64,000 nt of DNA from Dimorphilus gyrociliatus (lineage: Eukaryota; Animalia; Annelida). The stretch is from contig CAJFCJ010000015.1 of the NCBI GenBank assembly GCA_904063045.1, forward strand, positions 1,123,034 through 1,187,033, read 5' to 3'. The first letter of the stretch is position 1; each line of letters begins with the position of its first letter. The notes below the pieces were generated by a model. The model worked only from the letters and a program-made list of their open reading frames with translations, was not told where the DNA came from and did no database searches. Shown piece after piece: positions 12,741 to 32,576 of this stretch. A program made the translations under genes and the position numbers.

Positions 12741-15700
12741 TTACGTCTTAGTACCGCTGCTTATTTCATTATCAAACTTTAAAACTAGATTTTCAGGATT
12801 TTCCGTAATATTTATATAATAACATCCATCTCCAAAGCTACGATTTGAGTTCTCAGAATTGTTTAGACCGTCTTTTCCCGTAGTAATAATACTTTCTGAA
12901 TTTGCCAAAGGTCTAGCTTCATCTTCAGATTTAAGGGTGGTATTTCTCGTCTATTTAGGCGGTCAGAGAAAGAGAGAGAAGAGAAAGCAAATAAAGAAAT
13001 TATATGAATAAGCCTAATAGTAAGAAAGAAATACTAACCCCTCCTATTGATGTAAGCCTTTGAGTTAGATAATCTGTAAAGATCTGTTGATATTTCTCCG
13101 GTAGCCAATGTTGTTGTTTTAACCATCTTAAAGATGCTCTTTGAATGATTAAACTTCTTAGGCAAAGAAACACAAAAACACTTAATCCTTGCAGTGTATT
13201 CAAAATAGTAAATATATACGCCGACCATATATATTTCGTTGATATGTAGAGAAAGCCAAATACCCAAATAAATCCAAAGGTAAATAGCATTTTCAACATA
13301 AATTGGATCATTGAACTGTTTTTTTCATAGTGAAAAGAAAATAAGTGTAAAAATTACAATACGAAATTTATTTATATTTCACTCAACTAGAATTTTTTTC
13401 TTTCCAACTTTTCCGATCCGCTCGAATGTTTATCTCCTTCTACAAGTCTTTGATATTTTATGCAAATTAGTATGGATGATATCATGTTAAGCTGGGTAAA
13501 TGAATGTTCATAAGTTATAATATATATTTCTTTACGTTTTATAATTAACAATACCAATATTACAGCTGAAACTGGAATTATAAAGTAGTAGATAAATTGA
13601 TTGTTTCCAAGCCAACAACTGGAAAAAGTTAACATCATTTAATTTAATGATTAAAATTCATAAAAAAGGTGATGATTTACTAATTTTCAGTTCTTAATTG
13701 AGCAAAATTTCCTCTAACAGCGTCCAAACATATTGCAAATGGAACACCTGAATAAGAGGTTTAAAAAATAAACAATGTATTATAAATAACAGGATACTTA
13801 CCATATCCTGTCAATAAGAATTTCCACTTTATTCCCGACTTGGGATCATATACTAAAACAACCATAATTATTGATAATACACCATATAATCCCATCCACA
13901 CAAAACCACTCAGAAGAAAGAATAGTAAAAATAAACCAATTACTTGACATAAAATCTGATAAAATTCATAAAAATAAATGATTAATTAAAAAACTTTCAA
14001 CGGAAGTAAATGATAAAAACAAACTTTATCTGAAGTCTCAGTTATTCCAGTAAGAAAAATAAACTGTGAAGTCAAAAGGCATATACTCAAATTCACATTT
14101 ATCATAAAACATATTTCATTTGTCACTTTATCACGGAAACTTTCCCTTAAAACAACAAAATCAGTTATAAATTATTTCTGTTGCGTGTTTTAATACTTAC
14201 CGAAATTTTAAAAATATAATTAAAGACATAAAAAGGAAAAACATGGATATTGAACATCCTATACGGGTAATAATCATCAGACTGAGCTTATCAGCATCTG
14301 ATATCTTTCAGCATAAAATTTATGGTAATTGAGTGAAAACAAAGGAAATATGAATAAAACATACCAATTTATCAACTCCATGTATATCCATTAAAATCGC
14401 AAAGTTTGTCAAATGATTACATCTACACTTTACGTGCGTCTTGTTACTTTCCTCTTTCATCATAAAACATCCGTGATTCGACCAAACTCCTTCCTTATTC
14501 TTATCCCTTCAAATTTGAAACAAGTCAAATATCAATAACTTTTCCTTTCATTTTCATCTTCAAATCTCTCCTTCTATTAAAAGATTACAACTAATTTCTC
14601 GAAATCGTTCTACTTACGTTGAAGTTGTATTCCAAAATGAACATTCAGTATTTCCCACTAAGCTTTTCTGTGAATAACGAATGACATCTTTACATTTATT
14701 TATCTATTTATCTATCTATCTATCTGTCTGTCTATCTTCATCTTTTCTCCTAATAACCTTTTACTTACATCTTTCCTTTCGACTATCAAAAATACGTCAC
14801 TCTCCAACGCCGATTGTTTTACTGAGTTTGTCGACAAAATGGCGGCAATTACTTTACTGTTAAACACTCTTTTTCCTTTTCTGCTTTCACTTTCTACCGT
14901 CTTCTTTCCACGAATCGTCAATGTTTCATTCATTTCCCCTCGCCATGTTTCTTCTTCGACGATGCGTTTGTTATTGAGAAGAACATCTTCCATATTCGAA
15001 TATTCGATAAAGATCAGAACGCTTTCATCATTCACAAGACCTAAATTGAAGACATTAAATTGATGGTTTCTTATTGCAACACTTATTTTCAATATGCGTA
15101 GATGTTGTATATATAAAAATGAGTGCGAGTGTGTGTGTCTGTCTGCCTGTCTGTCTGTCAACCTATACTTTTGTCTCTCTCCCTCCGTCTATTGATCCCC
15201 AATCCCCAATCCCCACTTTTATCTCACTAACAAATCTTTTTCACTCTTCACACACTACGTATTCACCTCCAATAGCCTTTCGAGGGATAATAAATTCATT
15301 CCTAGAATTAGTCGAATCCTCTTCACCATCTTCGCTCCGGCCGAAGGCTGATTGTCTTCCAATCGACGATGTAAAGATGAATTCCGTGTTTGACTGTCGA
15401 GTTGAATTATTCAATTTCTGAATACTAACAACTGCGTGGGAAAATAGAAACGATAGTCAATTTTGCGCCACTTATTTTAAATGTTTTCTACAAGAAACCC
15501 AGTTGATTAGAAGTGATAACCGACCTACGTTTTCCTCTTCTATTAATAGAGAATCAGTATTGTTTCTCTGCAAAAAGATACTATCTGATATCTTCATAGT
15601 AGTCTCTTCAATGCTAGTGATCATTCTAAGAGCAGTTTGATGTCGAGTTGTTTGCGAAAGTTCCTCCCAAACGAGAAGTTTATCGGGTTTAAGAAGATTA

Positions 15701-18455
15701 CTAACAGATTGGGTAATAGCCTAAAAGAAACAATTATAAATTATAGACCATAAGTAATGAAAGTAAAGTAGGTGGAAATGATAAACCTTGGTTAAATTAA
15801 GTGCTTGATTATAGGGCATGTTGTGTACGTCATTCGATAGTTGTAGCATTATTTCACCTATCACAGTTATATCTCCGGCATACAGATGTTGAGTTTTTGT
15901 CATTTTCAGAATATTCTGCGAAATATTCTGAAATATTTCAAATTGTCTTTCCGACTTGTTTGTATTTTGTAATTCTTCGTTATTAGAGACTTTTTGAATT
16001 AGGTCGTTAGTGGTGTTTATCTAATTCGTAAAATAGAATGGAACTAATTAATGATTTACGGTAAAGTTATGATATACCCAATTGATGGAAGAGTTAGTGT
16101 AATTCGAAATGCAATTTGAAGAATTATGTCTTAACCATCCACCAATTTTAAAAGAACAGATTCTAGTAGCATCTTAAAAGAAATTTGTTAGTTATTCTCC
16201 TTGAAAGTACTCTTCATTTATTCTTACTCTGATTGTTATATGGGCATGAAGCTGTCACGAGCTTTATCTCTTCTTTAGAGGAAACAGAAGTATTTTTCCA
16301 ATAGATGTGCTCTAATGAATTTTCAAGGCATTGTATGAAAGTTATTGTAGAATCGTTTTTATGTGATTTCGATGGTAGAATTTGTGTTGTACTTTGATCT
16401 TAAAATAAAGAAAGAAGAGTTAAAAGTGAAGTCTTATAAAGAGAAAAATGATATTTAAAAAAAAAAGAAAAACAATTACAAATTTCATCCGCTTCCAATG
16501 ATTTATGGTTGTTATTAATTGCTGTAGATTTGAAGATTCGATTAATTAACTGTGAATCAGTTGTAGCAATTGGATCGTAATTTTCTGTTGTTGTTGCTGC
16601 TGTTAATTGATTATCCAGTAAATGATTCTTTAGAAAACTAGTTGTACGAATAGTGGTGATAGTTGAGTCTGTAAAAATTGTAATTCTTTTTTAACAATTC
16701 TTTATTGAAGTATTGAAAATTTTCTCTAAAAAGTAGTTCGTTGACCTACAGTAAAATTTAATTAAGACTATTTATAATGGTAATTTTTTATATAGCAGCT
16801 TAAAGTGTAAAATCTTTAAATAGTTCTTACTTGTTTCGTTAAATATCTTTGATGAATGTGCTATTGTCGTCTCTCTATTTGATTGATAAGAAGAGGATAT
16901 TTTCTCTGTTGACTGATTAACTAATGAATACGATGTTGTTACTGTTGTTGCTGTTTCTGTCGATGATAATGATGGATAATTAGAGGATGAACGGTAAATA
17001 TCTAATTTCTTTTGTTGAGTTTCAAAGGTTATTTTCTTCGAAGAAGTTGTTAACGATGAATTTGTTTCTTTTACCGGTTTCGACAACAACTTTTCAGGGG
17101 TAGACGTATATTCAAAATCAGTTTTACTCGAAATACTATTTTTACTGTTGGTAGAATTAATTATTGATGTGGTGTGTTCAATCCATTCGGTTAATTTTAA
17201 AGTAGATATACATTTAAATTCAATCAGCATCTTAAATGGCTCATTATACAAATTTAAACCATTAATTGGTACTTGACAATCGTGCTTATTGCGACAACTG
17301 AAATAAATATATAAACATAGTTTATAGCCTATAAACTAATTAAAATAATAATAAAAAGTATCAACCAACCGCTCAATTATTTTTAATTTAGAACGACTAT
17401 AAGTTCCCCAAAGTAAATATGAGGCCATTTGGATATCAGTCCAGATATTATTCACCATTAAAGTAGACCTTTCCGTGTCACAATTTAAATGAATGAATGA
17501 AGAATCGTTGTTATAGTATGGTTGAATATTCAAATGTTCTTTTGTTATACAATCGTATTCGAAGGTAAAATTAGCTACTAATTCGCAAAAAGATTGTTTT
17601 TTGAAAAGGAAATCCAAATTGCAAGTTTCTCTGAAGTTACATCTATAATAAAGTGATTCATCATATCATTAGATAGATATTAAATAGTATAGTATCATTT
17701 TTTTTTACTTAAACATTATACTCTCTTCCAAAACATATCTACAGGAACAATAGTCGTCAATGCAAGTAAGATTTATAGGTAGATGATTGCTATGAATAAG
17801 ACTTCCCAATGGACATTTTATATTAGTTTTATTAATGTTGTCTATAAAAATTTGATAAGATGTCTTTATCAAGTTTGTCTTCTTTGAATCGTTGCCAATA
17901 ATCATTTCCTTATCTGTATAATTATATAAAAATTACTTAAAATAGCTTGATAATAAATCTATTAATATTAATAAATTCAATTAAAATTGACCTACTCAAG
18001 TCGTAGTTGTAATGATTACAAATATAGTTAACTTGAACCGATTCTTGACATTCTAAACGATCAAGATGATAAATAGTACAATTCTTTAAATAATTACACC
18101 TGAAAAAAGTTGATTCATTCATTCATTATTTTACATAGTTTAACTTATAAAACAAAAATTTTACCTCTGTTTGAAAATGAAATTAATTGATTCAAAACAA
18201 GTGAAAGAATCCGAATTGTTAGTTGCATTAAAATCAATTAAAATAAAACTATCGTCTGAACATTCAATATCTATCTTTGACATTCCATTTTCATATTCTA
18301 CGAATAAGGTTTCTGCGTAACAATTGAACCTGTTTAGTTAAATGATGAATCGTTTCTTTTAATAAAATTTTTATTTGTATAAATATGAAATAGTACCATA
18401 ATAGACATAAAATATTGATTATTAAATCTTTATTTGTTCTATTATTACGCATCAT
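12741..18455 (-). CDS. Adhesion GPCR A (latrophilin-like): signal peptide, 3 degenerate SUEL/RBL lectin-like domains, S/T stalk, HRM, GAIN/GPS, 7TM
   Basis: Hand-spliced with no frameshift or stop. GPS is [27 protein letters not shown] is [24 protein letters not shown], and TM7 has [16 protein letters not shown]. Confidence 0.88.
14368..15773 (-). repeat. Left copy of a 1,406-bp inverted repeat (partner 21127-22532)
   Basis: Line-by-line comparison gives position + partner position = 36900 throughout, so there are no indels. One mismatch found (15575 vs 21325). Confidence 0.95.
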
Positions 18456-19240
18456 AATAGCCTTTAAAAAGGAAGTATAATATAATTTATACAAAATGAG
18501 TATAAAGAAACTTCTCAATGTTCTAATTTTTTGATTTCTTCAAATGTACGTTAAAGTTCGAATGACATAGTTTTAACTTTCCAACTCTTGCTTCCACAAC
18601 CCTGGACGGTTACTTTCTATATTATTTCTCCAAAAACACTTTTTTATGTACAATATATTGAATAATTGCCTTGATTTTTACAGGTCTATACAGTTTGAAA
18701 TAAACAAATATATACAGTAAACACTTTCTAACATACTAATATATACAAAATACGACAAACTATAATTATTATATTTTGGACATTATGCAAAAATTATAGG
18801 CAATTACATGTATTTATGATTACCTATATTCTATATCTAATAATACTCAATATATTAATAATTATGGATGTTTTACGTCACATATAATTTTTGCTCTCTT
18901 TTGTTAACTATTAATTAAGTTAATATAAGTTTCGTTGAGTACAATGCTACCAGTATCGTTTGAAAGAAAACAAAAAACATCAACCGGAAAGTAAAAAATA
19001 ACGAAAGTCTAAACAAAATAAAAAAAAAACAAAAGAAGGTATAATATCAAAATGCTACATTGAATATGTTTTTCTTTTATATAGTATTGAAATTGCTCAA
19101 AATACATCTATAAACTAATATATTTATTTATATATTTCTCTTATTTTTTGACCTCGCTGACTAAGAATCTAATATATAAACTATTATCAACAGAACATTC
19201 TTTCGATCCATTCGTTTGATAATTTTTCATAAATAAAACT

Positions 19241-22200
19241 ATGAGGATTAATGTTCAATTTTTCATTATTTTCTATATTCAATTAAAGAGGTAAATATAA
19301 AAACTAAGTAAAAATTTTAATATCTTTTTGTTTTGTTTTTGTTGTTTTTTTTAAAAAAAATAGTTTGATAGGAAAAAATGAAAGAAAAATTGACAATAGA
19401 GGAAATTCGTTTGAATTGAATTGCTATTCGAATTTTATGATTCAAATTGAAGAAGGTCCAGTTTATCCGATTGAAAGTCAATGCGACCTTCATTATAATT
19501 ACGTAAAAGAGTATTTTGCCTTAAGGTATAATGTCTTTATAAATATACTCTTTTGTTGTTAAAGATATACTAATATTTATGTATAAAACTGTAATTTTCA
19601 GATGTAATTTTAAAGAAAAGTGCTCCATAAAAAGGAAATCCGTTCATTTTATTAAGAATTGCACGCGATTCAATGGAAATATTGTGTATACGTGCATTAA
19701 AAAGGTTATGGTGGCTATATATCCAATAATGAATACTGCATATTTATTAGGATGTCCAAACCATACAACTTTAAAGATTAATTACCTTTGGATAAGCTTT
19801 TATAAATATTTCGTGAAAACTTTACTTAATCAAATTTCTAAAGAACTCCTTGAAAATGTTAAAAATTCCATCAAAAATATTGAAAAGCTGTTAATTGAAC
19901 AGTAAAAACAATTCTTAATATTAAAATAATCAAATAATTTCTACTTATATATTCATATATATTCATTTTTAGATGTAATGGAAAGACAATATGCAAATTT
20001 AAAGATTTAAAACTTATAAGAAGATGTCCTATTATTAAAATTCTTCACGAATGCATTCCTTCTACATCTGGTAATGATTCGATATGAATATAATTTAATT
20101 TTATCATACGCTTCTCTATTTATATAAACATATATGGAAGAAACTACAATTGTGAATAATCAAGCAACATTATCAACGATAAATGGCGAGCAGACGTCTT
20201 ACAGTACGTCCCATGGAATTTATACATCCACTACCGAACGAACGGTTAATAGTGAATTTTCAACAACCGATAACGAAGAAGGGACCACAGCTTCGGTAAC
20301 CTATTCAACGAAACATCAGCAATCCTCTCCAATTGGCAAAATTTCAACTACCTATTCTCAAAAAAGCCAACTTTTAAACAAAGAAGAAGAAGAGAAGAGA
20401 ATCACTAATATGCCAAGTAAGGCAATAGGAACTTTCCAAACAACTACTGAAGATTCGAATAAAACTATGCATAATAGTAAGGAAAAGTTTCGAATTTATT
20501 CAATATCTATAATTTAGCTACATTACTAATTAGTTCCCTCACTTAATTAGGCTCTCGTTTCACTGCTAAAGAAAGCACAATGGCATGGATTAACACAGAT
20601 AAGCCAATTCTAGAAATTAAATGCTTGGAAGAATATTCTGGTATATTTCATTGGAAGCAGACAAATGTAACAAATTTCGAGGAAGAAGTTCTTGTTAGCA
20701 GTTTATGTCCTGATGGAGAAAATAGTAAAGCTCAAACACTATTTTACATATTCCGTTAAGCCTATCGTATTATTATAACAATTACAGATGCTACCAGAAT
20801 ATGTTCGTACAACAATCAAGGTTGGTTAAGAATGAACACTTCTAATTGCCAATCGAGCGAAATGTTGGAAATAGATCAAGAGGTGGTACTACTGATATTT
20901 TGAAGAAAACGTTCAATTTAATAATTATTATATTAATGTTTTCGTAGCCGAAATCTCAGGAAAATTTAACAAATACAGCAAATAAAATATCCAAACTGAC
21001 ACAAACAGGTCGTCTATATGCTGGGGATATTAGTCTAACTGGAAAAATCCTTCAAGTATTATCTAAGAATATAGAAAATGTTACGTTTACGCAGGCAGAG
21101 AATATAACCAAGGTAATATCATTTCTACCTACTTTACTTTCATTACTTATGGTCTATAATTTATAATTGTTTCTTTTAGGCTATTACCCAATCTGTTAGT
21201 AATCTTCTTAAACCCGATAAACTTCTCGTTTGGGAGGAACTTTCGCAAACAACTCGACATCAAACTGCTCTTAGAATGATCACTAGCATTGAAGAGACTA
21301 CTATGAAGATATCAGATAGTATCTCTTTGCAGAGAAACAATACTGATTCTCTATTAATAGAAGAGGAAAACGTAGGTCGGTTATCACTTCTAATCAACTG
21401 GGTTTCTTGTAGAAAACATTTAAAATAAGTGGCGCAAAATTGACTATCGTTTCTATTTTCCCACGCAGTTGTTAGTATTCAGAAATTGAATAATTCAACT
21501 CGACAGTCAAACACGGAATTCATCTTTACATCGTCGATTGGAAGACAATCAGCCTTCGGCCGGAGCGAAGATGGTGAAGAGGATTCGACTAATTCTAGGA
21601 ATGAATTTATTATCCCTCGAAAGGCTATTGGAGGTGAATACGTAGTGTGTGAAGAGTGAAAAAGATTTGTTAGTGAGATAAAAGTGGGGATTGGGGATTG
21701 GGGATCAATAGACGGAGGGAGAGAGACAAAAGTATAGGTTGACAGACAGACAGGCAGACAGACACACACACTCGCACTCATTTTTATATATACAACATCT
21801 ACGCATATTGAAAATAAGTGTTGCAATAAGAAACCATCAATTTAATGTCTTCAATTTAGGTCTTGTGAATGATGAAAGCGTTCTGATCTTTATCGAATAT
21901 TCGAATATGGAAGATGTTCTTCTCAATAACAAACGCATCGTCGAAGAAGAAACATGGCGAGGGGAAATGAATGAAACATTGACGATTCGTGGAAAGAAGA
22001 CGGTAGAAAGTGAAAGCAGAAAAGGAAAAAGAGTGTTTAACAGTAAAGTAATTGCCGCCATTTTGTCGACAAACTCAGTAAAACAATCGGCGTTGGAGAG
22101 TGACGTATTTTTGATAGTCGAAAGGAAAGATGTAAGTAAAAGGTTATTAGGAGAAAAGATGAAGATAGACAGACAGATAGATAGATAGATAAATAGATAA

Positions 22201-24241
22201 ATAAATGTAAAGATGTCATTCGTTATTCACAGAAAAGCTTAGTGGGAAATACTGAATGTTCATTTTGGAATACAACTTCAACGTAAGTAGAACGATTTCG
22301 AGAAATTAGTTGTAATCTTTTAATAGAAGGAGAGATTTGAAGATGAAAATGAAAGGAAAAGTTATTGATATTTGACTTGTTTCAAATTTGAAGGGATAAG
22401 AATAAGGAAGGAGTTTGGTCGAATCACGGATGTTTTATGATGAAAGAGGAAAGTAACAAGACGCACGTAAAGTGTAGATGTAATCATTTGACAAACTTTG
22501 CGATTTTAATGGATATACATGGAGTTGATAAAAGTGTCAGTATAATTGTATCAACTTACAATTATAGATTAACTTGACAAATAATTATTTTTGTTTGTTT
22601 TTCTTATGTCTGCAGTTATCGGAAATTGATCGATTTGCTTTAATGATAATTACTAGATGCGGATGTTGTGTATCAATTTTTTTTTTAATGATAACAATTA
22701 TTATTTTCGCAAAGTTCCGGTAAGTTTCTCCTTGGTGCCTATTTTGAATGGTTAATTGTTATATATAAATATAACAGGAGAAAATTTTATGGTAAGGTGA
22801 CGAAGGAAGCGACTTTTTTGATTAACATAAATTTGAGTATATCATTATTATTGGCGCAAGTGATCTTTTCTATAGGAATACCGCAAACATCAAATAAGGT
22901 ATATCTTTAATTTAAATTAATTAAACTTAGTGTTTCTTACTATGTCTATTTATAGAGTTTTAGCAAATTTGTATGATGTACAGTAGATGTAGTAGCTATT
23001 TACGATTTCTTTTGCTTGTTTGTCTTCTTTTAGATCATCTGCCATGTCGTCACAACAGTTTTATTGTACTTTCTATTAGCTTGTTTCATGTGGATGGGTT
23101 TATACGGTATTTTATCACTAATTATGGTTATATTCGTATACGAACCAAAATCATCTTTAAGATGGAAATTTCTATCAGTTGGATATGGTAATGAATTAAT
23201 ATTTATAGAAAATTGTTTTATTAAATTGATAAATCAGTTAATTAATTAGATATTGTTTTTATTATTTTGTAAGGTATACCAATACTAATTTCAATTGATG
23301 TCGTAAAGGATTTCTTTCTAGAATTAAAGGAGAAGACTTAGTAAGTTAGATAAAATTGGAATATTTGCTATTTTTAGTTGTTTAATACTTTTGTCATTTT
23401 TTAATTAAACTAATAAAGTTGTTGGATTGACAAGAAACATTTTATCTATTGTTTCATTTTACCCCTATGTTTGGTAATATTCGTAAGTATTGAAATAAAT
23501 ACTTTTAAAGTGTTTTTTTTAACACAAATCTACGTATTTTCTAGATTAATTTAATAGCATCAATTGTAATTTGCATCAAATATCGACGTTCAACGGCCAA
23601 TCGTAATAATTTAAAGAAGATATCACATGTTAAAAAATCGGAAAAGGCTAAATTTTTGTACGAAATAGTTGTCTTTTTTTTTTATAAATGAAAGAGTATG
23701 GAAAATTTTGTAACTGTTTACTTTTGTTCTTCCAACTTAGATCTATGGTGCAGTTTATGCTAAAAATGCTATTTACCTTTGGATTCGTATGGGTTTTTGG
23801 CTTTTTATATATTTCGACACAATTTGTATGGGCAGCATATATATTTTGTATATTAAATTCCTTACAAGGGCTAAGCGTATTTATATTCATCTGTGCACGG
23901 AGTGAAATAATAAGGGACGCATCGAGAAGATGGCTCAGAAAACAGGGCTGGGTACCTCAAACATTACAAGATAAAATATTAACGAGTTATTCAACATCGA
24001 AAGTATCACAGGTAATAGTATTATATCGATTAATTAGTATTATTACTTGAAAAAAAAATGTTCTAATTAGACGCCAACAATTGAGAAATATCCACCGGAA
24101 GATGAAAATTTATCAACCTGCCAAAAAAATTCAAGTAAATCCATTTTATGGCCGCATTTAGCAAGTTCAGAAGAATTGAATACATTTGTGAAATCCAAGA
24201 AAATGAATTCAAAACAGGAATATATAAAAAATATTTATTGA
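19241..24241 (+). CDS. Adhesion GPCR B: signal peptide, 2 degenerate SUEL-like domains, S/T stalk, HRM, GAIN/GPS, 7TM
   Basis: Starts [16 protein letters not shown]. Lectin-like RCNFKEKC and [52 protein letters not shown]. All TM exons splice in frame to TGA at 24239-24241. Confidence 0.88.
21127..22532 (+). repeat. Right copy of the 1,406-bp inverted repeat (partner 14368-15773)
   Basis: Reverse-complement identity includes introns and microsatellite lengths. ORFs 21479-21826 and 21739-22188 translate identically to 15074-15421 and 14712-15161. Confidence 0.95.
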
Positions 24242-24776
24242 AAAATTTGAATTTTCTTTTTTATTCATTTTACCTTTCTCAAAGAATTTCATAAAGAAAT
24301 GATTAAGTTTATATATATATATACTGTATACTGTATATATCTTAGAGTAATCATAGCCATATCAACCTACCTATTTTTTTATTTTTTAAATCTTCTATTT
24401 TAACTGAGTGATATGTGATTAATTAGATAATAACTTACTACATATTTTATCCGTAGAGTTTTATCTTCTCTCTGTCTCTCTTTTTTCTCATTCTTTTATA
24501 TTCTGTAGTTTCAGGAACATATTCGTATATCTTATTAGTGGTTTTAAGAGGAGAAAACAAGTAATATTTTTTTAGTAGATACTGTATATATCTATCTATA
24601 TATATATATATTTTAAAACTAGAATAAAAGAAGTAATTTACATATTCTATATACGTATATATAAAGTTTTTAATGCATAAAACATATAAATATATCAAAG
24701 TATATATGAAAAACTCAAAATTGAAGTTTTTTTTCTTTGTTTGTTTAAAAAAAATATAAAGAAAATAGTACATTCA

Positions 24777-27700
24777 TCATTTTCTTCGTACCTCTCCAGT
24801 TCTTTCATCTTTTTGCAATATTATCGGCATTTGAGATGTGTTAATAATTTCGTATGCATTTGTAAATCTCTCTAAATATATATCATTTGGATTTAAATAG
24901 ATTGAAGTTTCATTTTCTCTTTCTCTTCTAATTGGTTCGTTATTTTCAATTGTTTCCGATCTATTCAGTTTGTCATTTTTCGATTTATCACCCGCATTGA
25001 AAAGTTCCTTTATTTTTATAGTAGAATAATAAAAAGACTATGTTAATTTGTAGTAAATAGATGAAAGAGCTATTTACCCCTGATGATGACGAATCTATTA
25101 AGTAATTAGTTAGTTTGTCTTTAAAAGTTAAGGATAACCAAGTTCTTTTTCGTAGCCACGTTAAAACTGAACGTTGAATAATAACGCTCTTAATACATAA
25201 GAAATAAAAGATGCTTAGGCCTTGTAAACTATTTAAAATGGTGAAAATATAAGCGGCCCATACGAATTTTTTCGAAATGTATAAAAATCCAAAAGTCCAA
25301 CTAAGACCAAATACGAAAAGCGTTTTCAAAGTAAATCTTAAAACAGAACTGTAAACAAATATCAATTAATTAGTTAATTAGCTAATATCCAATCAGCTTA
25401 CTAGTATTTTTTAAGCTCTAATTTTTGGTTTTTAAGACAATGTTTCCGATTATGAGAAAGACGCCATTGTTTAATAGAAACAATACATGTTACTATTAAA
25501 TTTATCTAAAAGGAGATGGGAAATAGAAAATTAACTTAAGTTAATTAAAATTATTAGAAATAATAGTTTATTTACTAAAATCACAACGGCAAGTGGACAA
25601 ATAAAATTCCAAATAAATAGTTCTTTCCTCAACCAACAGCTAAGAAATTAATAGAATATTTATCGTACGTCTATGTTTCGACTGTATACTTACAAATTTC
25701 TGGAGCTTAACCCCTGGAAATTTAGCCCTACCGTAATACCAACGATAATCCCTGGTAAGGCTTTAAAAATACAAAATATAATGTTATTTATTAAATAAAC
25801 TCTTAGAACGTATGTGAATAGAATATATAGATATTTTATCTTTAGTATATTCCCTTACCGTATGCAATTATAAGGAATTTCCTACGTAAAGATGTCCTAA
25901 CCTCAAAGATTACAACTACTAGGAAAAAAGTTAAGACTCCTTGCAATCCCATCCACATAAAACTTGAGAGAAGACAATACAATAGCAAGCCCCCAATCAA
26001 TCGACAAATCAACTTTCATTATAAAATTAATTATGTCAATAATAACAAACTTATGAATATTAATAACTTACTTGATTTGAAGTTTGTGTTATACCAAATA
26101 GAAATATTAATTGAGATACTAGTAATGTTAAACTCAAATGAATATTTATGAGATTTGACATTGCAGAGCTTCTTTTGGCGTTAAAATTTTTTCTATATGA
26201 ATGGAAATAATTAATATTATGCATTAATTAACATAAACTGACCTAAATTTTATAAACGGAAATAAAGATAATACAAGGAAGAAAACTGAGACAGAACATC
26301 CAACACGACTTATAATAGAAAGGCTAAATCGATGTTCTAGAGAAAGCTAGTTAAGGAAGAAAGAGATTAATCATTCTTTTTATATGGAGAATATATTTCA
26401 TTCTTTTCTTTACAGTATCTTCAACTCCGTGCATATCAAATAGAACAGCAAAATTAGTTAAATGGTTGCATTTGCATTTCGTATGAGTAATGTTACTCTC
26501 CTCTCTGACGAAAGAACATCCTGACTGTGACCAAGACCCGACATTTTCCCTTTAAACGAGAATTATTTAATTAAAAATGGAATTTATTGATAATTTTATT
26601 AATTAACCTTGACCCTAAATTCCAGTACGAGCATAATGTCTTACCATTCAAGTTTTTCTATTCAAAGCAATATACATTATTAACATATAATAATAATAAA
26701 AATTTATACAAAACCTTCCTATTTTCAGTTATAAAGAAAATATCACCCGAAACTTTCAACTGCTTGAAATTTGAACCGTCAATAGCCGTAGCACTAATGA
26801 CTCTGCTATTTAAAACTGTATTATTATTTTTTAAAGTCGTCTCTAACATCTCTTCAATATTTGAATATTCAACGAAAATTAAAACAACTCTTTTACTTTT
26901 AGTTTCTAAAGTAATAAAAATTTGAATATTCATTAAAAAATTATTTTATGAATATTTATGAATATTAATTAATACTTATTGAATTTTTTGGAATAATAAA
27001 TTCATTTGTATATCCTTTTCTTCTATGTTTACGGATGTAATTTGGTGAAAATTTATACTTTTCAACAGTAGAATCATTTTTTTGATTAATCTCTTCGGCG
27101 CTTATAACTATAATTATAAACGAACTCTATATATATATTGTTTGTAAATTTAAGCCTATATAAACAAACCTAAATTATCAGCAATAACTAAAAGATTCGT
27201 TTGATTCAACGATTTACTCTTAATCATATTTAATGCAGTACTTTCGGCAATTTGCACTAAACTTTCAACGATTCTCATTCTTCGAGAGTTATACACTTCT
27301 CTCCACTTTTTAACCTTTTCCCCACTTAACAGATTATTAATCGACTTTATTATATCCTTTGTTTTTTTAGAAAAACAAAAATCTATTTAACCAATTCTCT
27401 AGCATTTTTAACAACTTACTCTAGAAATATTATAAACTGAATTCTGAATGGGAATAGTAGTATCAATCTTTTTCGATATTAGATATAAAATCTCTTCAAA
27501 TGCTTCGATATTTCCAGAATATTCTAAATTATTCATTGTTTCTTCAGCTAACCTTCTAGCAATATTGTAATTTGTTACTTTGTTCTGTTTCAGCTGTAGA
27601 AAAATATTTCTAAAATTTAGTAAAAAATTTAAATAATAGCTTATGAATATTCAAAAGAGAAAAGATGCCTTACATCTATTAATATTTTCCCAATAAAATC

Positions 27701-30700
27701 TGACTTACAACTGGTAGTATTAGGTCGCTTCCAGCCTTTATCAAAAGTACACAATCTTGTAGCCTCTGAACGAATAAAAAGATATTAACCTTACAGTTAA
27801 ATTTAAATTAATTACTACTTTCGTTATCTGGACATTGTATTGTTACTTCTTTTTGTGTCTCTTTAGGTGATACATAGACAGTTTTCCAAACCAGACCATC
27901 TATAACTTCCCTTGGACATTTTGTTATTGATATTTTAGTAGTCGATACAATAGTTGACTCCTCAAGTATAAAAGTTTTATCCATTCGTTGATTTATTCCA
28001 TTCGTTGATGTAGGGAATATCTGTGTAAATGATTTCGATTGTTCTAATTGTATCTTTTTAGAGGACTCCTCTTTTATATTCTCCTTTGCTGTTGGCCAAT
28101 TTGTTTCAGCTGACCTTGTCGAGGGTTTATCTGTTATGAAATTTAAGGAGTGATCTTGATTTTTCTCCATTGTCGATAAAACTATTGGCGAAATTAAGTT
28201 ATTGCTAGTTAATTTCGGCAAAGGAGTTGATCCAGCTGAAGAATAGTCATCAGGCAACTTCGTTGAAATAACTTCCCTTCCTATTCTAGAAACTGGTTGT
28301 GATATTTTTTCGACACTATACGCTGTCGTTGTAGTAACCTTTATATTTTTTGTTGCTTTCTTAACTTGCGTAGCTAGAGATTCAAATGAATTATTCTGAT
28401 CTTCATAAGTAGCTTTCGAGATGCCAGCTTGAGTAAAATCTCTTAATTTGGGCTTAATATTAGTCCTATCACGCCAAGCTACATCTGTTACTGCTATCTT
28501 AGCTTTATCACTGGTTGTTGAAACGATATTTATTTTAGGATAGCTTGTCTGTACGGATCTGGGGATAGATACTTTTCCAACAACATCTTTTAATATCGTC
28601 ATCAGTCTTCTTTCAGTTGTTGAAATGCTAATCATTTGAGAGTGGTTACTCTCCTGAGAACGAGGTGTAGCTTTCTTTACAGTTTTATCTATTACCAGAG
28701 TTTTGGATTTAATTCCATTCGTTGTAAATATCTCTGCGTAGTTAGGTGTAGATATTTTCCTAACAACATCAGCTGACAAAGTGTGTGGTATCCTTTGCGT
28801 TAATGAAAAAGCACTTGTTCTAGGAATGCTATTTTCAACAGAGGAAGGATTGATAAACTTTCCACTGTCTTCAACTGAAGCACTCGTTGGTCTTTCCTCA
28901 ACTGATGTAAAGACATTGGTTACTGGATTGTTGGCTCTGACAGAAGAAGGTTCATATAACCTTCCATTGTCTTCCACTGAAGCACTCGTTGGTCTTTCCT
29001 CAACTGATGTAAAGACGTTGGTTACTGGATTGTTGGCTCCGACAGAAGAAGGTTCATATAACCTTCCATTGTCTTCCACTGAAGCACTCGTTGGTCTTTC
29101 CTCAACTGATGTAAAGACGTTGGTTACTGGATTGTTGGCTCCGACAGAAGAAGGTTCATATAACCTTCCATTGTCTTCCACTGAAGCACTAGTTGGTCTT
29201 TCCTCAACTGATGTAAAGACGTTGGTTACTGGATTGTTGGCTCCGACAGAAGAAGGTTCATATAACCTTCCATTGTCTTCCACTGAAGCACTAGTTGGTC
29301 TTTCCTCAACTGATGTAAAGACGTTGGTTACTGGATTGTTGGCTCCGACAGAAGAAGGTTCATATAACCTTCCATTGTCTTCCACTGAAGCACTAGTTGG
29401 TCTTTCCTCAACTGATGTAAAGACATTGGTTACTGGATTGTTGGCTCCGACAGAAGAAGGTTCATATAACCTTCCATTGTCTTCCACTGAAGCACTCGTT
29501 GGTCTTTCCCCTACTGATGTAAAGACATTGGTTACTGGATTGTTGGCTCCGACAGAAGAAGGTTCATATAACCTTCCACTGTCTTCCACTGAAGCACTCG
29601 TTGGTCTTTCCTCAACTGATGTAAAGACGTTGGTTACTGGATTGTTGGCTCCGACAGAAGAAGGTTCATATAACCTTCCATTGTCTTCCACTGAAGCACT
29701 AGTTGGTCTTTCCTCAACTGATGTAAAGACGTTGGTTACTGGATTGTTGGCTCCGACAGAAGAAGGTTCATGTAACTTTCCACTATCTTCAATTGAGGCA
29801 GTCGTTGGTCTTTCCTCAACTGATGTAAAGATGTTAGTTACTGGATTGTTGGCTCCGACAGAAGAAGGTTCATATAACCTTCCATTGTCTTCCACTGAAG
29901 CACTCGTTGGTCTTTCCTCAACTGATGTAAAGACGTTGGTTACTGGATTGTTGGCTCCGACAGAAGAAGGTTCATATAACCTTCCATTGTCTTCCACTGA
30001 AGCACTCGTTGGTCTTTCCTCAACTGATGTAAAGACGTTGGTTACTGGATTGTTGGCTCCGACAGAAGAAGGTTCATATAACCTTCCATTGTCTTCCACT
30101 GAAGCACTCGTTGGTCTTTCCTCAACTGATGTAAAGACGTTGGTTACTGGATTGTTGGCTCCGACAGAAGAAGGTTCATATAACCTTCCATTGTCTTCCA
30201 CTGAAGCACTAGTTGGTCTTTCCTCAACTGATGTAAAGACATTGGTTACTGGATTGTTGGCTCCGACAGAAGAAGGTTCATATAACCTTCCATTGTCTTC
30301 CACTGAAGCACTCGTTGGTCTTTCCCCTACTGATGTAAAGACATTGGTTACTGGATTGTTGGCTCCGACAGAAGAAGGTTCATATAACCTTCCACTGTCT
30401 TCCACTGAAGCACTCGTTGGTCTTTCCCCTACTGGTGTAAAGACGTTGGTTACATGATTGTTGGCTCTGACAGAAGAAGGTTTGATTAACCTTCCACTAT
30501 CTTCAACTGAGGTAGTCGATCTTTCTTGAACTAATGTAAAAGCTTTTATTATTACATTATTGATTTTAACAGAAGAGAGACATTTAGATTACTTACCTCT
30601 GTCTTTATCTAATATAACTTTTGGCCTTTTTCGCACAGAAGAATACGTGTCTGTTGCAGGGTCTTTTCTTTCTGCAGAATTTGGTGTTTGCAGTTTTTCT

Positions 30701-32576
30701 TCTTCTATTATGACAACTTTTGATCTAGAATCAGTTGTTGAAAAGGCACTTGTTGTTGAACTGTGTTCACTTGTAGATACAGCTGTATCTTTTTTTCTAG
30801 TTTTATGTACGTCAATAGGTTTGGCCGTAGTCTCAGTTGTTGTAATAATGTTGTTTGCTAATGTGTTTTGTTGAGATACATCTGTAATTGATGAAGGTTC
30901 GGTTGAAAATCCTGCTTTTATATGTGTTTTTCCTGCTTTTGACAAATATACTTCCATTTCTGGAGGAGTGAGGATAGTCAACGCATTAGCAACTTCATTT
31001 GGTATAAAAGAACTCCTACTTGATTCAGAGTTGTGAATAGGCTGAGTTCTCCTATTGAGATGATCAGTTTCCTTTTTCTTGTATATAGTGTTAGTGTTCA
31101 GAGATAATATTTTATCAAGGGTTGGTTGGATAGTTGCAATATTCTCTTCGCTTATCGCTTGTATCGAACTCAGCTTCTCTTTTGTCGATCCCCGAACATT
31201 GTTTAAAATTTCCGTTATGATATTTTTAGAAGACACTTCGGTATTTAATTCATTCTTATATGTTGTAAATTTTGGACTGTGGAATTTTGTCTGCAAAGAA
31301 TTAGTCGTAATTGTAACCGGTTGTATACTAGTTTTTTTTAATTCCTGTCTTATTGATGATTGTCGTACATTATCGGTACTAGTTGTTTTAATAACATGTT
31401 TAGTAGATAATTTAATTAAACTTTGAGACTTTGAACTGGTCTGCTTAAGTGCATTTTTAGGTGTGATAAACGAAGTTTTCATCTCTCCATCATTTTTATT
31501 CAAATCTTGTGTTATTTCTTTAGAAGGCTTAGTTGATAAGTCTGGTTTATCTGTCAAAAGTGAATTTGATTGCATACTCTCATTATTTTCGTCAATTGCC
31601 TTCAATTGAGGGTTTGTCGTAGTAAATTTAATAAAATTTTGTGCTGTAGTGGTTTTAAGAGTAGTAGTACCCGATAATTTAGCAGTCGTTTCTGTAGTAT
31701 AAGCAATGATATTATAGGATAATTAATAAAGGAGAATAGAGAACCATTCGATATACATTCATGGGAGACCTTTGATATATAACAACCGCTCATATAAACT
31801 GGATATCTATTCGTAAAAAGTATTCGTAGATCAACAGTACATTTCGTCTTCTTGTCACACCTATAATAAACTGTTCTGTAGACATTTTAATAAACAAACT
31901 GTTAAAGTAAACATACTCTTTAAGTACTTTAATTTTAATAAAAAATCTGCAATCAATATCGCATCTCTCTATATGTCCAACCCTAGATTCGTCCCAAACG
32001 TACTCATCGGAACATATTTGAAAGTCAGTCCAAACGTCATTAATTCGTATCAATTTATTATTTTCACAGTTCAAGTTAAAAGAATAATCAGTAGGGAGAA
32101 TTAAACTTTTTGAAGGGTGTTTTGTTGAGCATTCAAAATCAACTTCAAACGAATGAAGGCTATAAAGAAAGCAAGGATATTTTCGATAAAAGGTATCGCT
32201 TGTATCACATTCTCTTTCAAAGTTACATCTATATATAAATGAATTAAATAATTAATATATAACTTTTACACGTTCATTTTAAATCGATAAACCTGAATAA
32301 AATACTTTGAAATGTTACATTATCAGCTAATAGCATTTCATGATAACAGTCACTCCTCCTTGGTTCTTCCGTAAAAGGCGTACTTACAATATTAATAACG
32401 GAACCCTTAGGGCATTCTAATATAGGATCATCGATTGATAGCGTTTTAGTTATTATTTTCCCATAAGATCTATAAAAAAAAAGTTAAATAATAATTAAAC
32501 ATCAATTAAAAAATTGTAATAATTACTCAACAAATTCTGTATTATAAAATAAAAAGAGAAGACAAACTATCCTCAT
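24777..32576 (-). CDS. Adhesion GPCR C, roughly 2,200 aa: signal peptide, 2 degenerate SUEL-like domains, very long mucin-like stalk with 34-aa repeats, HRM, GAIN/GPS, 7TM
   Basis: Starts [12 protein letters not shown]. Lectin-like [78 protein letters not shown]. The exons splice in frame to TGA at 24777. Confidence 0.88.
28876..30507 (-). repeat. Coding tandem repeat, 16 full units of 102 bp (34 aa: [34 protein letters not shown]), plus degenerate flanks
   Basis: The 102-bp period was read directly (e.g. TACTGGAT at 28921 and 29023). Units were counted in ORF 27808-30405 plus one upstream unit. Confidence 0.97.

Follow-up and report, generated by a model that had tools for sequence, protein, structure and literature searches.

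A near-identical inverted repeat in the autoproteolysis modules of two diverged adhesion G protein-coupled receptor genes of Dimorphilus gyrociliatus, probably kept alike by gene conversion

We analyzed a 64,000-nucleotide stretch of the genome of the annelid Dimorphilus gyrociliatus (GenBank assembly GCA_904063045.1, contig CAJFCJ010000015.1, positions 1,123,034 to 1,187,033, forward strand), hereafter the window, with positions counted from its first letter. It carries two paralogous genes for G protein-coupled receptors (GPCRs) of the adhesion class, g1 and g2, which lie head to head and are divergently transcribed. A 1,406-nt tract that encodes most of the GAIN domain, the whole GPS motif, and the tethered agonist is present in both genes as an inverted repeat with a single mismatch. 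Near-identity thus extends to silent and noncoding sites and is bounded on both sides by much older divergence between homologous exons, the pattern that marks gene conversion. We favor intrachromosomal gene conversion between the inverted arms, probably recurrent and with a very recent last round, as a reasonably probable explanation.

Extent, edges, and content of the inverted repeat

In a base-by-base comparison, positions 14368 to 15773 match the reverse complement of 21127 to 22532 at 1,405 of 1,406 nt, with no indels; a repeat search called slightly longer inverted arms, 14353 to 15783 and 21117 to 22547. The sole mismatch, 15575 A versus 21325 C on the plus strand, turns a TTT (Phe) codon of g1 into TCT (Ser) in g2. 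Identity runs through the introns, where 0 of 584 positions differ: a (TATC)10 microsatellite occupies mirror positions in both arms, and GACA, CA, and GGGGATT runs lie within the intron at 21634 to 21859. When the tract was used as a blastn and tblastx query against the whole window, only the two arms were recovered, apart from weak protein-level matches in a third paralogue, g3. The features, with the evidence for each, are as follows.

12744-18540, minus strand: g1, a latrophilin-like adhesion GPCR gene, of which 12744-15903 is annotated as DgyrCDS10453 (homologous exons, protein mapping)
19241-24238, plus strand: g2, the paralogue of g1, annotated as the partial DgyrCDS10454, start codon at 19241 (protein mapping, RNA contigs)
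14368-15773, minus strand: left arm, with the GAIN (from about Pfam profile position 52), GPS, and tethered-agonist exons and four and a half introns of g1 (identity, protein mapping, read words)
21127-22532, plus strand: right arm, the same module in g2 (DNA contig with exact ends, RNA splice joints, Pfam)
21180-21375, 21469-21633, 21860-22131, 22233-22282, and 22394-22535, plus strand: right-arm exons (RNA joints, Pfam)
22485-22532, plus strand: predicted GPS cleavage site His-Leu/Thr, with 22490 and 22491 on either side of the cut, followed by the tethered agonist; the two genes have the same sequence here (mirror in g1, 14415-14368)
21325, plus strand: the only difference between the arms, C (Ser) in g2, opposite A (Phe) at 15575 in g1 (assembly only)
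21101-21126, plus strand: fuzzy 5' edge (22 of 26 positions match g1 15774-15798)
15774-21126, no strand: diverged spacer of 5,353 nt with the 5' halves of both genes, namely, N-terminal exons, a mucin-like exon, Cys-rich exons, and the first GAIN exon, and, at about 18540-19240, with the intergenic or promoter region that they share (DNA contig, homologous but diverged exons)
24991-31605, minus strand: g3, the third paralogue, which serves as an unconverted control (GAIN exons about 25 to 62% identical to the tract)

The tract is sharply bounded. Ungapped identity drops immediately beyond it, to 16 to 38% per 50-nt bin, and reaches background by about 30 nt at both ends. At the 5' edge, the perfect tract begins within the intron downstream of exon D, the last diverged exon, after 14 nt of intron in g2 and 13 nt in g1; exon D ends at 21112 in g2 and at 15787 in g1. 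Just outside this edge, a fuzzy zone made up of the last 12 nt of exon D and the first 14 nt of the intron matches at 22 of 26 positions (85%) with a 1-nt indel, whereas the remainder of exon D is 62% identical. The 3' edge falls at 22532 (..GVDK), 3 nt short of the exon end at 22535, which is fixed by the RNA joint 22535^22616; beyond it, we found no similarity, and the first 100 nt score like shuffled sequence. The tract comprises 275 codons between two phase-0 introns, in frame and at the homologous position in both genes, and each edge is within 15 nt of the donor splice site of a phase-0 intron (21113 and 22536 in g2; 15786 and 14364 in g1). The structure differs from a palindrome, in which identical arms adjoin a short central spacer: here the arms are internal to the genes, the 5.35 kb between them is diverged, and the exon order is homologous.

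The largest exon of the tract, used in a search of representative proteins, matched with 100% identity a 923-amino-acid protein, DgyrCDS10454 (CAD5122001.1, partial); its neighbor DgyrCDS10453 was found by a region-restricted protein search. Pfam places the GAIN domain at residues 413 to 650 of g2, GPS at 679 to 726, and 7tm_2 at 743 to 917, and the order is the same in g1 (E values: 7tm_2, PF00002, 8e-25 in g2 and 8e-33 in g1; PF16489, 2e-22; PF01825, 2e-14). The cleavage consensus, CRCNHL/TNFAILMD with the slash at the predicted cut, directly precedes the seven-transmembrane (7TM) domain. With a Secretin-type 7TM and a GAIN domain that contains GPS and the HL/T consensus, both products are predicted to be adhesion GPCRs (class B2). 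We use "latrophilin-like" for resemblance only, because at E 0.01 to 0.1 Pfam revealed neither a Gal_Lectin nor an HRM domain, whether DgyrCDS10454 or individual N-terminal exons were searched, and because the best outside matches, ADGRL-like proteins, extend only over GAIN and GPS, about 45% of the region at about 44% identity; as judged from domain content, the genes would not be placed in the latrophilin (ADGRL) subfamily. Residues 461 to 734 of DgyrCDS10454 are encoded by the tract; they span most of GAIN, GPS with its cleavage site, and the tethered agonist as far as ..HGVDK. About 48 residues at the start of GAIN come from the exon before the tract and show 48% identity between g1 and g2.

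Outside the tract, we compared nine flanking exon segments (333 codons) of g1 and g2. Protein identity is 42 to 71% and nucleotide identity is 50 to 73%, with the longest exact nucleotide runs in these exons at 7 to 23 nt. Synonymous differences are saturated (pS of 0.74 upstream and 0.76 downstream), compared with 0 of 170 synonymous sites in the tract, where the Phe/Ser change is the one protein difference; the flanking introns tested just beyond the tract do not align. The 7TM domains of g1 and g2 are 62% identical. Because the flanks are saturated and the first 100 nt past the 3' edge score as random, the paralogues must be far older than the present state of the tract. The 7TM of g3 is 51 to 53% identical to those of g1 and g2, and its GAIN domain is no better conserved than its 7TM. 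A region-restricted search of the annotated D. gyrociliatus proteome yielded no third protein with this GAIN segment, the next best being DgyrCDS1062 (36%). We dropped the use of g3 to assign a donor direction, as g3 is too diverged from the tract. Separately, a 102-nt unit is repeated in tandem 16.4 times (96% matches) at 28838 to 30510 in g3, within an open exon of 865 amino acids that encodes a Ser/Thr/Pro-rich, mucin-like stalk.

A first-pass annotation made from the letters of the window had described a 1,406-nt inverted repeat with one mismatch, no indels, and identity even across introns with simple-repeat tracts, in two genes that are highly diverged elsewhere, including at many synonymous sites of the last transmembrane exon, and that keep distinct signaling and ectodomain ends. 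The comparisons above bear out each of these points; the ectodomain exons, like the 7TM exons, are diverged. Two other statements need qualification. Confinement of the repeat to the GAIN, GPS, and tethered-agonist exons holds for GPS and agonist in full and for most of GAIN, but not for its first 48 or so residues, which lie outside. The limits given for the tract, from just inside an intron to ..GVDK, stand as well, except that the start is not wholly sharp, given the 26-nt zone that matches at 22 positions.

The repeat in DNA and RNA reads

Our read evidence consists of contigs built from reads, not of raw or long reads: one DNA run (X1), whose contigs were assembled independently of the genome assembly, and three runs that behave as RNA (X2 to X4) and come from two studies, X2 being from the other study, dated 2017, under a probably older species name. 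In X1, a 5,413-nt contig consists of the spacer plus 30 nt of each arm and thus shows both inner junctions. The right outer junction is contained in a second contig, 22503 to 24339, which begins within the arm, 30 nt from its end. The tract itself is a single unbroken 1,406-nt contig with exact ends and a mean word depth of 705, versus 179 and 153 in the flanks. For the left copy with its flanks (13300 to 16900), X1 contains 99% of the words sampled. DNA contigs thus display three of the four junctions directly, and this word share implies the fourth. That the tract contig is unbroken and deeper than its flanks means that most of its 31-mers are common to more than one copy, so the near-identity is in the reads themselves. 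As far as these contigs tell, both copies are physically present.

RNA contigs lead to the same picture. In all three runs, they break at the same tract edges as the DNA contigs, and the spliced tract forms a separate 830-nt contig with depths of 288.6, 120, and 119. The g2-specific 5' contigs have depths of 42.8, 13 to 19, and 15.8, and the g2-specific 3' contigs have depths of 78.6, 15 to 29, and 25.4; X2 shows no differences over the g2-specific exons. GT..AG joints are found at 21373^21467, 21631^21858, 22131^22233, 22282^22394, 22535^22616, 23482^23545, 23657^23741, and 24009^24069. Both genes are transcribed and correctly spliced, the tract is common to both in RNA as in DNA, and g1 is about 3 to 6 times as abundant as g2.

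These data bear on whether the repeat could be an artefact of assembly, gap filling, or short-read polishing, with one gene in reality carrying a different GAIN sequence, a failing that the first-pass annotation had itself named as fatal to its interpretation. Pilon polishing with 101-nt reads can homogenize near-identical repeats, the mismatch appears in no read-derived contig, and X1 may be the source sample of the assembly. Such an origin is nevertheless scarcely credible: three of the four junctions and an unbroken tract at more than twice the flank depth come from read-built contigs, and RNA contigs from two studies, including the 2017 run, break at the tract edges, with the shared piece at summed depth. 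Neither the DNA junction contigs, nor the tract depth, nor the RNA breakpoints show a copy with a different GAIN. Moreover, the assembly was made from a PacBio library size selected for fragments of at least 5 kb and was polished with Quiver and then with Pilon using 101-nt reads (PMC7854359), so single reads span a 1.4-kb arm, and the loss of a few true differences is the most that polishing could have caused. Position 21325 is T, the g1 allele, in every read-derived contig, DNA and RNA, and identity of the arms may be 100%. This T decides nothing about the Phe/Ser variant, because contigs drop minority variants and g1 dominates the RNA.

Identical arms in inverse orientation also raise the prospect of a recombination switch, in which a crossover flips the 5.35-kb spacer, so that each 7TM half acquires the promoter and ectodomain of the other gene. 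Identity of the arms and the phase-0 introns that bound them would keep either isomer in frame; such a crossover is what the same recombination can yield instead of conversion, and palindromes are known to undergo rare inversions (PMC3723533). The g2 3' RNA contig is 1.5 to 1.8 times as deep as the 5' contig in all three runs, which would fit 11 to 18% flipped molecules but equally fits ordinary 3' bias. Because both isomers give the same k-mers, short-read contigs are blind to orientation. The low depth of the g2 5' part, however, pairs with a likewise low g2 3' part, whereas the flipped form would join parts that differ 3- to 5-fold; this fits the assembled orientation being the main form. 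No recombinase-like open reading frame and no short specific sites are evident in the window, and arms of 1.4 kb point to general homologous recombination and hence at most to a rare germline polymorphism, not a programmed event. We therefore regard a switch as hardly plausible.

The public gene models of g1 and g2 disagree where their DNA is identical. An internal Met in the exon that precedes the tract serves as the start of DgyrCDS10453, and this model lacks 14 residues present in DgyrCDS10454; the homologous upstream exons of g1 (about 16050 to 18340, reaching about 18500) are in no gene model. The DgyrCDS10454 model (19241 to 23598) stops after the fifth transmembrane segment, but RNA contigs continue through 23545 to 23657, 23741 to 24011, and 24071 to 24238. 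Multi-mapping of short RNA reads in both arms is the likely cause of the inconsistency. In the shared promoter region, RNA contigs at 18897 to 19093 have depths of 65, 85, and 18, above those of the g2 exons. Contigs of the three runs start at 19011 after identical unmatched sequence, and A-rich low-complexity sequence at 19011 to 19044 attracts unrelated contigs; the signal may be a repeat-derived artefact or a small separate transcript.

Recurrent gene conversion and its alternatives

We propose that an old inverted duplication gave rise to the two head-to-head latrophilin-like genes, most of whose length then diverged to synonymous saturation. Over 1.4 kb, beginning at the donor site that follows the first GAIN exon and ending with the GPS exon, intrachromosomal non-crossover recombination would have maintained identity: once one arm breaks, a strand would invade the other arm, which lies about 5.4 kb along the same molecule, and synthesis-dependent annealing would follow. 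Repeated since the duplication, such rounds would have prevented the island from ever diverging, and its edges would be located where flanking homology has been lost. Both receptors would as a result share one GAIN/GPS autoproteolysis module and one tethered agonist, combined with distinct ectodomains and with 7TM bundles of only 62% identity. That the tract replaces the exact homologous in-frame segment fits recombination rather than random insertion. A mobile element was considered and rejected, since the tract has no terminal repeats and consists of in-frame exons that continue the flanking exons and are spliced as such.

The last round must have been very recent, because only one difference is found in 1,406 nt and microsatellite lengths are identical. 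These observations, together with the sharp edges, are also what a single very recent conversion would leave between paralogues whose GAIN segments had by then become as diverged as the flanks, and no comparative data contradict such an event. We nonetheless consider it unlikely. Homologous repair requires near-identity, whereas the flanking exons offer exact runs of at most 7 to 23 nt at 59 to 68% nucleotide identity and the tested flanking introns are unalignable; in g3, GAIN is no better conserved than the 7TM. A single event would also leave unexplained the 26-nt zone at 85% and the GC-rich, lengthened introns of the tract. Low flank homology, the fuzzy 5' edge, and GC enrichment of the tract introns make recurrence the more probable course, and the 85% zone looks like the remnant of an older, slightly longer tract. 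The very recent ectopic conversion proposed in the first-pass annotation is thus supported as to both conversion and recency, but a one-off event is mechanistically hard, and we favor recurrence.

The introns of the tract contain 31.8% GC (29.9% with simple repeats masked), compared with 18 to 21% in the flanking introns (Fisher p of 3e-8 and 1e-5), and they are longer (67 to 226 nt versus mostly 60 to 85 nt). The homologous introns of g3 are short, with about 14% GC. GC at third codon positions is 34% in the tract versus 26 to 30% (p of 0.03). GC-biased conversion has been described for palindrome arms (PMC3723533, PMC8981503), and the enrichment would be expected from such a bias, an analysis that we treat as suggestive only.

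A replication-based template switch between the nearby inverted genes, through fork stalling or microhomology-mediated break-induced replication, would dispense with long homology, and the setting is apt: the genes are inverted, 5.35 kb apart, and of low flank homology, with a 9-nt exact match, TATCATTTC, just outside the 5' edge. It would, however, call for two switches at exactly homologous positions without an indel or a change of frame and with the splice sites left intact. At the 3' edge, there is no microhomology past the tract, and GC enrichment would remain unexplained. This mechanism appears very improbable to us.

Several observations weigh against recurrent conversion or limit its support. 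Placement of the edges from donor site to donor site has a chance probability of about 1.5%, calculated post hoc, and plain conversion does not predict it; the only mechanism that we can offer for it is selection against conversions that would disturb the neighboring, functionally diverged exons. All the read evidence comes from contigs, and X1 may have been the source sample of the assembly. The ratio of tract to flank DNA depth is 3.9 to 4.6 and not 2, with other single-copy contigs at 164 to 283. We attribute the excess to Illumina GC bias, which the genome paper reports as strong in D. gyrociliatus data (PMC7854359); the tract contains 35% GC and the flanks contain 27%, in a window that is AT rich overall (31% GC). 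Going by contigs alone, extra copies elsewhere in the genome are also possible, and we rejected copy number estimates from depth as unreliable, given that they would combine contig mean depths with this documented bias. The raised GC content and the greater length of the tract introns may also have come about in other ways; GC-biased conversion is known from palindrome arms of other organisms.

Finally, the only outside relative found in the collections searched is a 1.3-kb metagenome contig, so that recurrence is judged here from paralogues within one genome. It was the one relative fragment (54% identity) found when 1.84 billion representative proteins were searched with the largest tract exon, and it lies on a marine metagenome scaffold (ENA ERZ23500112; 1-1283), presumably from a related meiofaunal annelid in that sample. 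The scaffold carries exons D to G of one orthologue-like gene, in the same order and with about 35 to 54% protein identity. Dating the duplication with this scaffold was dropped, as it holds one gene only and its exon D is about equally distant from g1 (36% identical) and g2 (39%).

Known systems and meaning for receptor function

Gene conversion between inverted paralogues is a well-established mechanism; what sets this case apart is which module is homogenized and the internal position of the block. In EMR2 and CD97, the homogenized module is reportedly the ligand-binding EGF region. In g1 and g2, unlike in that pair, the GAIN/GPS/tethered-agonist module is homogenized and the ligand-binding end is diverged; the phylum and the gene orientation also differ. 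The resemblance lies in clustered adhesion GPCR paralogues of which one module is near-identical by conversion while the rest differs, a mosaic evolution, and concerted evolution by gene conversion has been described for EMR2 (ADGRE2), CD97 (ADGRE5), and EMR3 (Kwakkenbos et al. 2006, FASEB J 20:2582, as cited in PMC2720389).

Near-perfect inverted repeats also cover divergent or convergent paralogous pairs in Caenorhabditis (Zhao et al. 2007, PMC1803023). As here, these are old inverted duplications, 95 to 100% identical within a species while orthologues diverge, and in some pairs only part of the coding region is identical, with the rest at about 50 to 60% (PMC1803023). The identical part in Caenorhabditis, however, adjoins the center of the palindrome (intergenic arms and 5' coding ends), whereas in D. 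gyrociliatus it is internal, with a 5.35-kb spacer and diverged center-proximal 5' halves. Maintenance across species was shown in Caenorhabditis (PMC1803023), while our data concern one species. Sex chromosome palindromes likewise have inverted arms that are at least 99.9% identical, with GC-biased conversion and rare inversions as crossover outcomes (PMC3723533, PMC8981503, PMC8600007), but their arms measure tens of kilobases to megabases and hold whole genes on nonrecombining chromosomes; the arms described here are 1.4 kb and subgenic, in a compact 74-Mb genome. Mammalian BMP8A/B, DDX19A/B, and TUBG1/2 offer a further parallel: stretches above 97% identity, whose boundaries are conserved, sit within paralogues that otherwise diverge, and BMP8A/B is also inverted (PMC2720389). 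In the mammalian pairs, persistence for more than 100 million years was shown by species comparison (PMC2720389), whereas for g1 and g2 recurrence is our inference.

For genome evolution, the repeat amounts to a very clean subgenic conversion island: its edges are exact, and the animal genome that holds it is compact. This makes it a worked example as well as a warning for annotation, since the public models of g1 and g2 differ inside identical DNA and both are truncated. It is also conceivable, though we think it quite unlikely, that identity of the module is kept by selection and is more than a by-product of recombination. Fragments could re-associate across genes because the whole interface between the N- and C-terminal fragments is identical, or a crossover could flip the spacer; in both cases, two ectodomains and two 7TM signaling units would make four receptor combinations from two genes. 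A single tethered agonist would in that event need to activate 7TM bundles with only 62% identity to each other.

The two genes form a natural domain-swap experiment, in which one GAIN domain, cleavage site, and agonist sit on two ectodomains and two 7TMs. Caenorhabditis elegans LAT-1 loses 7TM-dependent signaling when it carries the GPS of LAT-2, which is 50% identical (PMC3776922), and this result raises the question of how the diverged 7TMs of g1 and g2 tolerate the same agonist. In the "split personality" model, fragments from different receptors cross-assemble (Silva et al. 2009, as cited in PMC3776922). Cross-assembly of g1 and g2 fragments would face no sequence barrier.

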